Below, one piece after another: positions 27,201 through 30,200 of a stretch of DNA of 64,000 bases (the stretch's first letter is position 1; each line of letters starts with the position of its first letter). The stretch comes from Macrostomum lignano (taxonomy: Eukaryota). The notes below the pieces were generated by a model. That model saw only the letters and a program-made list of their open reading frames with translations. It was not told the origin of the DNA and ran no database searches. The DNA is taken from assembly GCA_002269645.1 (NCBI GenBank), contig NIVC01002860.1, positions 62,001 to 126,000 of the forward strand, in the 5' to 3' direction. The translations under genes and the position numbers were made by a program.

Positions 27201-30200
27201 CTCTCTCTCTCTCTCTCTCTCTCTCTCTCTCTCTCTCTCTCTCTCTCTCTCTCTCTCTCTCTCTCTCTCTCTCTCTCTCTCTCTCTCTCTCTCTCTCTCT
27301 ACTCTCTGCTTCCGCGGTCCCGGGGTCGATTAACGGCCTTGTTGTTTTAATTAACTGGCAAGTGCGAGCTCGCGCTAAACTCTTGCAGAGTCGGCGGGTA
27401 TCCGCTGATCCTCTGGCAATCCCTCGCATCTTGTTCCCGGATCCAAGAATAAAAGGAATTCTCTGCGGGCTTGATGAGGCCGAGGGTGATAAAAAAATAG
27501 AGCCGCATAATTGGCCCGGAATTCGCGCCCCTGAGCCTGGAGGGGATATTTCTCTCCAAATTGAGATCCCAATTGCAATTTTCTTCTCACTTAGCGACCA
27601 ATCCCGCCGTTGTTCTTTTCCGATGAATGAAATAAAATTTCTGCTTCTGCGGATCTCCCTGCGGCGGATTGACTTGCATTTCTGGCGGCTCAGCACTGAA
27701 CTTTTCTGCTTCTGGCATCATCAGCTTTGTGCGAGCCTTATTTGCCGGGACTGCTTCTCTGGGGTCTGACTGTGTCCGGGTGTTCGGCTGTGTTCGGGTG
27801 TCCGAATGTGTTTGACTGTGTCCGGGTGTTTGTTTGGCTGTGTCCGAATGTGTCCGGTTGTGTTTAGGTGTTTGACTGTGTCCGGGTGTTTGGCTGTGTC
27901 CGGGTGTTCGGGTGTTCGAATGTTTTTGACTGTGTCCGGGTGTCCGAATGTGTCCGGGTGCCCGAATGTGTCCGGTTGTGTTTATGTGTTTGACTGTGTC
28001 CGGGTGTCCGAATGTGTCCGGTTGTGTTTAGGTGTTTGACTGTGTCCGGGTGTTTGGCTGTGTCCGGGTGTTTTAATGTGTCCGGGTGTGTCCGAATGTG
28101 TCCGGCTGTCCGAATGTGTCCGGTTGTGTTTAGGTGTTTGACTGTGTCCGGGTGTTTGGCTGTGTCCGGGTGTTTGACTGTGTCCGGGTGTGTCCGAATG
28201 TGTCCGGCTGTCCGAATGTGTTTGACTGTGTCCGGGTGTCCGAATGTGTCCGGGTGTCCGAATGTGTCCGGTTGTGTTTAGGTGTTTGACTGTGTCCGGG
28301 TGTCCGAATGTGTCCGGTTGTGTTTAGGTGTTTGACTGTGTCCGGGTGTTTGGCTGTGTCCGGGTGTTCGGGTGTTCGAATGTGTCCGGTTGTGTTTAGG
28401 TGTTTGACTGTGTCCGGGTGTCCGAATGTGTCCAGGTGTCCGAATGTGTCCGATTGTGTTTAGGTGTTTGACTGTGTCCGGGTGTTTGGCTGTGTCCGGG
28501 TGTTCGGGTGTTCGAATGTGTCCAGCTGTCCGAATGTGTTTGACTGTGTCCGGGTGTTTTACTGTGTCCGGGCGTGTCCGAATGTGTCCGGGTGTTCGAA
28601 TGTGTTTGACTGTGTCCGGGTGTCAGAACGTGCCCCGGGTGTCCAAATTCGTCCGTATATCTGAATGCGTCCGTATGTCCGAATGTGTCCGGGTGTCCCA
28701 ACGTGTCCGGGTGTTTGAAGGTGTCCGGGTTTCCGACTTTGTGTGTCCAAAAGAGCCTGATTGTGTGTCCAGGTGTCGGATTATGTCTGTGTGGGTCAAT
28801 TTTTCGTGTCCGACTGTGTGTGTGTCCAAGTGTGCCCAATTGTGTTTCCAAGAGCCCGGTAGTGTGATTATCCGAGTAAAATTTTTGTGTCCGATTGTGT
28901 CCGGATGTTTTAATTTCTGCTTCTCACATTTTGTTGTACCATAAAGTTACAAAGCTATACTTAATTTTAGTTACTACATGTATGTGAATAGATTTTTCTG
29001 TTTATAACAGCTGTGCTTTCATCAGCTGCAGAGGAACTGTATATATGTGTATTAGCCCGCATACTCCTGATAGCCAGCGTCTTATACCCCAGAATATGTT
29101 TTTTATTTCATAATTAACTACTAATGTTTTTCTAATCATAATTAATAATGCTAGCTCGCATTGGCGGTCACCCGAGTGACCCCAGCAGCAACGGTCGCGC
29201 ATTTTTGCTTAAAACTCCTGAGAGCTCCGCTGTGCTGAGCTCTGCCCGATCCGCAAGCAGCTACTCAACCTACCGAACCCGCTCATCCCCTCCCCATTCG
29301 CTCAAGGACAAGCAGGAGATTCTGGTGAGTCTGGTGAGCTGGTTCCGGGGCTCCGCTGCAGCCGTTGCCGTCTCCGGTTCGCGCGCCCACTTTTTTCTCT
29401 GTCTGTTTAATCCAAGCCGGATCCCACCACCACCTCACTAACTGTCGCACCTGCCTCTGAGACTTGAAGCTGACTGAATCGCTTCTCCACTCCGCTATGT
29501 GTGACAGAATTCCCCATCCAGTGTCCTCACAACCGCTCCTATCTCACCTGCGCTCTATTTAATCCCCTCTCCCTCTCTCTCCATGTCTCTAAATCTCTCT
29601 CCCTTTCTCCCTTTCTCTGCCTCTCCCTCTCTCCCTCTCTCTCCCTCTCTCATCCACTCTCTCCCTCTCTCATCCACTCTCTCCCTCTCTCATCCACTCT
29701 CTCCCTCTCTCATCCACTCTCTCCCTCTCTCATCCACTCTCTCCCTCTCTCATCCACTCTCTCCCTCTCTCATCCACTCTCTCCCTCTCTCATCCACTCT
29801 CTCCCTCTCTCATCCACTCTCTCCCTCTCTCATCCACTCTCTCCCTCTCTCATCCACTCTCTCCCTCTCTCATCCACTCTCTCCCTCTCTCATCCACTCT
29901 CTCCCTCTCTCATCCACTCTCTCCCTCTCTCATCCACTCTCTCCCTCTCTCATCCACTCTCTCCCTCTCTCATCCACTCTCTCCCTCTCTCATCCACTCT
30001 CTCCCTCTCTCATCCACTCTCTCCCTCTCTCATCCACTCTCTCCCTCTCTCATCCACTCTCTCCCTCTCTCATCCACTCTCTCCCTCTCTCATCCACTCT
30101 CTCCCTCTCTCATCCACTCTCTCCCTCTCTCTCCCTTTCGTCCCCTCTCTTCTCCTCTCTCTTCCTCTCTCTGCCTCTCTTTCCCTCCCTCTCTCTCCCT

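Follow-up and report, generated by a model that had tools for sequence, protein, structure and literature searches.

A probable cassette microexon at the SS2 position of an alpha-neurexin gene in the flatworm Macrostomum lignano

Results

The locus

The stretch of DNA analysed here, which we call the window, comprises 64,000 nucleotides (nt) of contig NIVC01002860.1 (positions 62,001 to 126,000 of the forward strand, assembly GCA_002269645.1) from Macrostomum lignano, a free-living flatworm (Platyhelminthes, Macrostomorpha). Its + strand carries the alpha-neurexin gene BOX15_Mlig001379g23, and an intron that splits the second LNS domain of this gene contains the 18-nt exon that is the subject of this work. 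An earlier note, made from the letters alone, had proposed a microexon at this place, corresponding to the vertebrate neurexin splice site SS2 and equipped with tandem in-frame donors. Our analysis leads us to conclude, with a probability of roughly 0.8, that the element is a genuine cassette microexon of the M. lignano alpha-neurexin, that it lies at the SS2 position, and that it toggles a six-residue insert in LNS2. GenBank already contains the exon itself; the novelty lies in reading it as the counterpart of SS2 and in the pattern seen across phyla.

The GenBank protein of the gene, PAA54791.1, is a partial sequence of 1417 residues. Its locus (NIVC01002860.1:65972-118612) corresponds to positions 3972-56612 of the window, with 100% identity over 52,641 base pairs, and the protein, mapped exactly onto the window, is split over 17 coding exons, the microexon counted. 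The encoded domains run in the order LNS1 (part)-EGF-LNS2-LNS3-EGF-LNS4-LNS5-EGF-LNS6, followed by a transmembrane segment and a C-terminal PDZ-binding motif, ...KEWYV. An exon model that we drafted from the window gave a single open frame from LNS2 to this same C terminus; a protein search with the draft returned an M. lignano protein of 97% identity, in whose cluster PAA54791.1 also stands. In protein searches the top homologues of the M. lignano protein are neurexins, and the best matches in the PDB are the neurexin-1 alpha structures 3R05, 3QCW and 3POY. By homology, the host gene is an alpha-neurexin. The features on which the following analysis depends are these:

5972-54612, + strand: range of the coding sequence of BOX15_Mlig001379g23 (PAA54791.1, 5'-partial), equivalent to 2001-50641 of its GenBank locus; protein mapped exactly
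26463-26653, + strand: exon 3 (LNS2), ending ...CGC AAC TAC GAG AAG, with donor AAG/GTAAGC; placed by mapping
26654-32243, + strand: SS2-position intron, phase 0, largely made of tandem-repeat arrays; placed by alignment, phase and repeat scan
29263-29306, + strand: 3' splice-site region of the microexon, an AG-free zone with a branch-like TACTCAAC and CTCAT motifs; read from sequence
29307-29324, + strand: probable cassette microexon GACAAGCAGGAGATTCTG, 18 nt, encoding DKQEIL; included in PAA54791.1
29311-29318, + strand: three internal in-frame AGs (AAG at 29312, CAG at 29313-29315, GAG at 29318), which could give +4, +3 and +2 residue forms
29321-29338, + strand: perfect tandem duplication of TCTGGTGAG (copies 29321-29329 and 29330-29338), which makes two donors 9 nt apart; also in the paralog described below
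29325-29330, + strand: donor 1, CTG/GTGAGT, used in the annotated transcript according to the protein mapping
29334-29339, + strand: candidate donor 2, CTG/GTGAGC, which would add GTGAGTCTG (VSL) and give a 27-nt exon; read from sequence
32244-32393, + strand: exon 4 (LNS2), starting VNVIFDD..., after ...caccag, with GTA AAC GTC ATC; placed by mapping

The microexon is included in a transcript model

PAA54791.1 contains DKQEIL, and exact exon-by-exon mapping places these residues at 29307-29324, with donor 1 used. The GenBank annotation of the M. lignano assembly was made from RNA evidence only, with no ab initio predictor: its inputs were the de novo transcriptome MLRNA150904, aligned with BLAT, and STAR plus StringTie assemblies merged with TACO, while transcript boundaries were taken from trans-splicing and poly(A) reads and open reading frames from TransDecoder (PMC5730564). 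Because the annotation is RNA-only, the exon is transcript-supported rather than predicted ab initio, and the insert, encoded within the SS2-position intron, is spliced into mRNA. That the exon is real we regard as close to certain. The earlier note had named, as the observation that would tell against it, a direct junction from 26653 to 32244 and nothing else; the GenBank model at the locus includes the microexon.

We also considered whether the 18 nt might be a chance pseudo-exon or an artefact of transcript assembly, absent from mature neurexin mRNA. The motif, taken by itself, offers no protection against this view. Candidates were defined by at least 12 pyrimidines in the 20 positions upstream, a non-G at -3, a GTRAG donor, and a length of 6-30 nt that was in frame and free of stops. 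The microexon site is the sole locus of this kind in the 44.4 kilobases of introns of the gene. Block-shuffled introns yielded 0.6 such loci in the SS2-position intron (probability of at least one, 0.47) and 3.7 across all introns, and the reverse strand of the introns yielded three. The motif is therefore not beyond chance, and on the motif alone a pseudo-exon would look the same. Since the shuffled introns and the reverse strand match or exceed the real count, we dropped the idea that the splice-motif pattern proves the exon. The exon is confirmed instead by the RNA-derived coding sequence on the same locus that contains DKQEIL. A defender of the pseudo-exon could add that the case is built on transcript models, not on reads. 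However, the presence of exactly these 18 nt between exons 3 and 4 in the annotation requires a transcript that carried them. The segment is also bounded by AG and GT, and it stands in frame within a 1417-residue open reading frame that came from a pipeline without ab initio prediction. An artefact of this sort is very hard to credit.

Splice signals and possible further forms

The site reads ...ccattcgctcAAG/GACAAGCAGGAGATTCTG/GTGAGTCTG/GTGAGC..., with the 18-nt segment at 29307-29324. The acceptor is AAG, its AG at 29305-29306, and it is preceded by a pyrimidine tract (17 of 20 positions) that is among the best in the gene and by an AG-free zone of about 42 nt. The other acceptors of the gene (n = 15) comprise 14 CAG and one TAG, leaving the AAG of the microexon as the sole non-YAG. 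A weak acceptor and a size of 18 nt are typical of regulated exons, and the combination of weak acceptor and very small exon found here fits regulated inclusion. Four AGs lie in the stretch, ending at 29306, 29312, 29315 and 29318, and all are in frame; use of the first is consistent with the annotated form.

On the other side of the exon, GTGAG donors predominate in the gene and donor 1, GTGAGT, is the consensus. Donor 2 lies 9 nt to its 3' side, in frame and with no intervening stop, and its GTGAGC is also the donor of three constitutive exons in the gene. To judge from these letters, donor 2 looks competent and a minor form with nine inserted residues, DKQEILVSL, is plausible. Public protein searches found no transcript or protein with DKQEILVSL, and only the +6 form was present. 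Our estimate is that actual use of the +9 form, as a minor form, is possible but rather unlikely, and that use of the internal acceptors is improbable. We also asked whether the +9 form might be an ancestral 27-nt exon, and rejected this as the likelier reading, the last 9 nt being a copy within a perfect tandem duplication.

A more ambitious proposal is that tandem donors and the internal acceptor together produce a full graded series of 0, +3, +6 and +9 residues, mirroring the insert-free, SS2a and SS2ab states of vertebrates. Donor 2, in frame, stop-free and like the donors of three constitutive exons, would allow it; so would the retention of the duplication in the paralog and the fact that every AG within the exon is in frame, and the vertebrate SS2 inserts, of 8 and 15 residues, are indeed nested. 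Nevertheless, the public proteins found show +6 only, and GTGAGT at donor 1 is closer to consensus than GTGAGC. On the acceptor side, the AG used is the first after the branch region, the paralog no longer has the internal CAG, and an exon of 9 nt would be extreme. A 9-nt duplication is itself unremarkable in a genome of which about 15% is simple and tandem repeats (PMC5730564), and one in three duplications would be in frame. The complete series is thus doubtful, and we think it considerably less likely than the use of donor 2 alone.

These results largely agree with the earlier note in its description of the site. The AAG, the 18-nt segment, the tandem donors and the internal CAG are as it gave them in sequence and coordinates, and the flanks (exon 3 ending at 26653, exon 4 starting at 32244) and the phase, 0 throughout, are also correct. 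Two features are absent from it: the duplication behind the two donors, and a possible +4 form (QEIL) via the AG ending at 29312. Its series of inserts fared unevenly: the +6 form is found in PAA54791.1 and the form without insert in a transcript of the paralog, and the +9 and +3 forms have no transcript support.

Position relative to vertebrate SS2

In HMMER alignments the flatworm ...NYEK/VNVIFDD aligns residue for residue with whdvkvtrnlrq/vtisvdg (NLRQ/VTISVDG) of neurexin-1 alpha. A query bearing SS2A showed no gap against 6PNQ and an 8-residue gap in 3QCW, between NLRQ and VTISVDG. Since 6PNQ carries the 8-residue SS2A insert at this point, the PDB alignments place the flatworm exon 3/4 junction exactly at the SS2 position, as had been proposed.

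Vertebrate SS2 has three states: no insert, 8 residues (SS2a) and 8 + 7 residues (SS2ab, 15 residues). SS2a and SS2ab probably arise through alternative donors, with which the nested insert sequences agree, and fish neurexin-2b isoforms have HAGIGHAM and HAGIGHAMVNKLHYM at SS2. The claim that vertebrate SS2 yields two insert lengths is correct, the lengths being 8 and 8 + 7. In the crystal structure of the SS2A form, HAM, at the end of the insert, lengthens strand beta-9 by its three residues, and the remainder is a disordered loop. The SS2 inserts of vertebrates strengthen the binding of neurexophilin and block that of dystroglycan; neurexophilins are absent from invertebrates (PMC12665717).

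The flatworm exon resembles vertebrate SS2 in several respects: it affects the same protein family at the same LNS2 residue position; in both cases small in-frame inserts are present in some mRNAs and absent from others; the insert ends in hydrophobic residues before the next strand (HAM/V in vertebrates, EIL/V in the flatworm); and the flatworm sequence has a potential nested longer form that would extend the insert at its 3' end. The two differ in that the flatworm insert is six residues long, DKQEIL, whereas the vertebrate inserts have 8 or 15 residues and contain H[SA]GIGHAM; the longer flatworm form is a candidate only; and the ligand enhanced by vertebrate SS2, neurexophilin, does not exist in invertebrates. 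DKQEIL has no likeness to HAGIGHAM or HSGIGHAM beyond the hydrophobic end, and it lacks the H[SA]GIGHAM(VNKLH..) sequence by which we would have recognised homology.

Inserts at this site in other animals

In the honeybee neurexin gene, exon junctions fall at the places of human SS2 and SS4 (PMC2570956), which implies that the intron is old. We scanned the site, defined as lying between WHxxxxxRxxxx and VxVxVDG, in proteins collected by an exhaustive profile search, by cluster look-ups and by an oyster-seeded search. The inserts found there were:

Arthropods (horseshoe crabs, scorpions, spider, Daphnia and many insects, including Drosophila grimshawi): I[ST]xxT[SG]FC[HRK], 9 residues
Barnacle: LVDSGHSVCY
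Oysters (RefSeq isoforms of Magallana, Crassostrea, Ostrea and Saccostrea): LT[IV]GNAKYI
Abalone (Haliotis asinina, isoform X4): LTRDKGVCF
Mercenaria (clam): LTYGRTFCD
Octopus: LAKDRGLFV
Phallusia, the one ascidian with an insert: KGDAVGPSST

Isoforms X3 and X5 of the Haliotis gene that gives X4 are cleanly without insert, and six RNA-assembly clusters of oyster proteins lack the insert that the oyster RefSeq isoforms carry. Among the proteins scanned, those of Mytilus, Nymphon, Lepeophtheirus, Owenia, echinoderms, Ptychodera, Clavelina and a nematode had no insert at the site. Many protostome proteins and one from an ascidian are annotated with an insert here, so use of the site is widespread: the position is a recurrent insert site across Bilateria, and it is alternative in molluscs at least.

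The flatworm insert shares its position with the protostome inserts, and like them it is small and in frame. Some isoforms have the protostome insert and others lack it, within one gene in Haliotis and within a species group in oysters. The flatworm insert is unlike them in length and composition. The protostome inserts, as read from annotated proteins, have 9-10 residues, follow a loose motif, [IL][TSAV]xxx[STG][FVLY][CYF]x, and often include a cysteine; DKQEIL has six residues, does not follow the motif and has no cysteine. The hypothetical DKQEILVSL would have the length of a protostome insert, its last three codons stemming from the 9-nt duplication. We examined and set aside a possible homology of DKQEIL to the DKGVCF of abalone LTRDKGVCF, in which 2 of 6 residues are identical, a level within chance; we make no claim from it.

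The earlier note had stated that the insert sequence is unrelated to that of vertebrates and had left the SS2 logic as either conserved or convergent. The first point extends to every SS2-position insert that we compared, to none of which DKQEIL is convincingly similar. On the second, the position turned out to be widely used; the insert is unlike all others, so neither option is favoured, and insert sequences do not discriminate between inheritance from the bilaterian ancestor and re-invention in an old intron. With inserts in so broad a range of taxa, the site may nonetheless be of deep ancestry, a possibility to be taken seriously. A joint reading goes further. In it, SS2 would not have been invented by vertebrates but would be an ancestral bilaterian site for an alternative microexon in the LNS2 hairpin. 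Flatworms, molluscs, arthropods, tunicates and vertebrates would all have retained the site, with turnover of the insert sequence, and in the flatworm the 9-nt duplication of the donor would independently have recreated a series of none, short and long like that of vertebrate SS2. This combination we put forward tentatively, as the less likely course of events.

Small insert differences also occur elsewhere in the RefSeq isoforms of Asterias neurexin (P0177, P0180 and P0181 as against P0175-P0179) and in Ptychodera (P0026, P0173). These echinoderm and hemichordate inserts lie in the EGF1-LNS2 linker (an SS1-like position), inside LNS4 and in the stalk. Splicing at multiple sites is widely annotated in invertebrate neurexins.

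A skipped form on a paralogous locus

The insert-free form is represented by PAA86589.1 (BOX15_Mlig002077g3, 687 residues), which reads ...KRNYEKVNVIFDD..., NYEK being joined directly to VNVIFDD. A word-indexed search with exons 3 and 4 (113 residues) missed this protein in spite of the exact stretch that it contains, a false negative due to the short query; the full-length model found it. PAA86589.1 is annotated on a paralogous contig, NIVC01000272.1 (locus L002), where a direct junction from L002 11482 to 18330 skips the microexon. The microexon of the paralog encodes DKKEIL. It lies in a region 98% identical to the window, with the acceptor, the pyrimidine tract and both donors identical and the tandem duplication of TCTGGTGAG retained. 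The only difference within 100 nt is a C to A change at 29313 (CAG to AAG, Q to K), which removes the internal CAG.

The transcript that skips the microexon begins differently from the one that includes it:

19011-19086, + strand: alternative first coding exon, signal-peptide-like, with donor GTGAGT at 19087; L002 2001-2075 in the paralog transcript

In the paralog transcript this exon is spliced to exon 2, which bypasses LNS1-EGF1 and keeps LNS2 onward. An unrelated RNA-assembly protein from another animal is built alike, its signal peptide leading straight into LNS2. At the other end, PAA86589.1 finishes in an alternative 3' exon, L002 33160-33462 (approximately 47000-47400 in the window), after LNS4 exon 8 (...KPKFATS/LKSMGLAKTL...). 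This ending could equally represent a truncated protein without the transmembrane segment or an incompletely processed RNA.

Several points have to be set against our interpretation. The evidence on both inclusion and skipping consists of annotated transcript models, not reads. The two forms come from two paralogous loci, about 98% identical around the exon (clusters Mlig001379, with the insert, and Mlig002077, without it), in transcripts with different first exons, and the skipping transcript has a different 3' end as well. Because the forms belong to different loci and transcript classes, splicing could be fixed per paralog or per promoter instead of being regulated. Identity between the paralogs at the exon, 98.3%, compared with 98-99.6% in the adjoining unique intron segments, reveals no extra conservation. 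No TGC (UGC in RNA) occurs within 60 nt upstream of the acceptor, the nearest being at -64. DKQEIL is unrelated in sequence to every other SS2-position insert, including those of arthropods and molluscs, which have a loose pattern in common. Finally, any effect of the insert on ligand binding would follow entirely by analogy with vertebrate structures.

The strongest competitor to emerge from these points is that the exon is constitutive at the window locus, the forms with and without insert reflecting divergence of paralogs or promoters. One paralog, or the long LNS1-containing class of transcript, would always include the exon; the other paralog, or the short class with the alternative first exon, would always skip it. 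The distribution of the forms over loci, clusters, first exons and 3' exons is what this explanation expects, and the C to A change at 29313, inside the exon, could alter an exonic enhancer. However, the acceptor, pyrimidine tract and both donors are the same at the two loci, and the exon has two traits typical of regulated exons, an 18-nt length and an acceptor that, alone in the gene, is not YAG. Transcripts were placed on near-identical loci by best match, which makes the assignment to a locus soft, and in abalone the same site is alternative within one gene. We consider a constitutive exon a distinctly less probable explanation, though one to be taken seriously. Three things argue for an alternative exon: its weak AAG acceptor, its minute length and the existence of a skipped form at the paralog. 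That a single locus uses it as a cassette is probable.

We had hoped that conservation between the paralogs might serve as a test of selection; it proved uninformative, as the 5' half of the SS2-position intron is 98-99.6% identical throughout. Along window positions 26654-32800 the identity with L002 is in fact a mosaic, at 98-99.6% in the 5' half of this intron, 92-94% in its 3' half and about 88% in intron 4. Such a mosaic suggests gene conversion, or patchy collapse of the duplicated loci during assembly.

Discussion

We favour a genuine cassette microexon at SS2, and its operation may be pictured as follows. The exon sits in an ancient intron of phase 0 that interrupts the second LNS domain, with ...KRNYEK on one side and VNVIFDD... 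on the other. When it is included, the splice sites are the first AG after an AG-free, pyrimidine-rich stretch and the GTGAGT donor, and DKQEIL is added to the beta-hairpin loop that is the site of the vertebrate SS2 insert; skipping gives an insert-free LNS2. By analogy with SS2A and strand beta-9, the hydrophobic end of the insert (EIL) may lengthen the strand that follows. A longer strand might in turn remodel the ligand-binding rim of LNS2 and so gate a ligand such as dystroglycan, again on the vertebrate analogy.

Two other systems invite comparison. Neuronal microexons controlled by SRRM3/4, or by Srrm234 with its eMIC domain, are in frame and at most 27 nt long, as is this exon of a synaptic adhesion gene. 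They too have a weak 3' splice site and add residues to a surface loop, and at 18 nt within a phase-0 intron the flatworm exon falls in the length range of the class (3-27 nt, in frame). SRRM-dependent microexons usually have a UGC close upstream of the acceptor; in this the flatworm exon differs from them, its nearest UGC being the one at -64. The second system is that of tandem alternative 5' splice sites created by short duplications. The flatworm exon shares with these its two in-frame, consensus-like donors, 9 nt apart in a perfect 9-nt duplication, and differs in that transcript support exists for the upstream donor only. We offer the tandem-donor scheme as a hypothesis suggested by the sequence.

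Reviews describe extensive alternative splicing of neurexins as exclusive to vertebrates (PMC12665717, PMC3229692), and our literature search found no paper on neurexin splicing in flatworms. An RNA-supported flatworm microexon at the SS2 position, together with the inserts of arthropods and molluscs, contrasts with this view. Because neurexophilins are specific to vertebrates, the original role of SS2, if the site is ancestral, cannot have been the binding of neurexophilin. An older ligand switch would then be indicated, for which dystroglycan is the obvious candidate. The question can be tested in small animals capable of transgenesis, such as M. lignano (PMC5730564).

Other Features of the Locus

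The microexon lies in a unique island, approximately 28737-29566, between two tandem arrays. The introns of the gene consist mostly of long tandem arrays, including a CT microsatellite, minisatellites of 18-102 nt and an array of a 22-mer in about 56 copies; arrays occupy 27179-28736, 29567-30252 and 30757-31961 of the window, and many further introns contain them.

Two other introns, 40961-45006 (after VNYGNGTK) and 51924-52914 (after ...VILQP(G)), occupy positions homologous to vertebrate SS3 and SS4. The motif scan of these two intervals returned no microexon candidate.

Coding sequence for LNS1 extends upstream of 5972 to an ATG at about 5449, in other frames. Across the LNS1-EGF1 region of exon 1 (5449-6284) three reading frames are used in turn, MLLWFL...RLKVSLRLS in the first and ...VHFGGLP in the second. 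Apparent 1-nt shifts fall near 5740-5765 and in a C-run near 5966-5970, and the GenBank coding sequence starts at 5972, immediately after the second of them. The shifts may be either indel errors of long-read assembly in GC-rich sequence or signs of a decaying LNS1.

Towards the 3' end, one further exon is worth recording:

53812-53948, + strand: additional stalk exon (PGPTGIIG...NSDG), present in PAA54791.1; placed by protein mapping

Lastly, LNS6 (exon 52915-53348) is enlarged by about 50 residues at approximately 53000-53130, in the loop before FEGQL; this insert contains a poly-arginine run and is found in three annotated M. lignano proteins. Neurexins of starfish and acorn worm have basic clusters (RRKRR, KRSKR) at the same loop of LNS6, and one may ask whether a basic or cleavage motif is conserved here.

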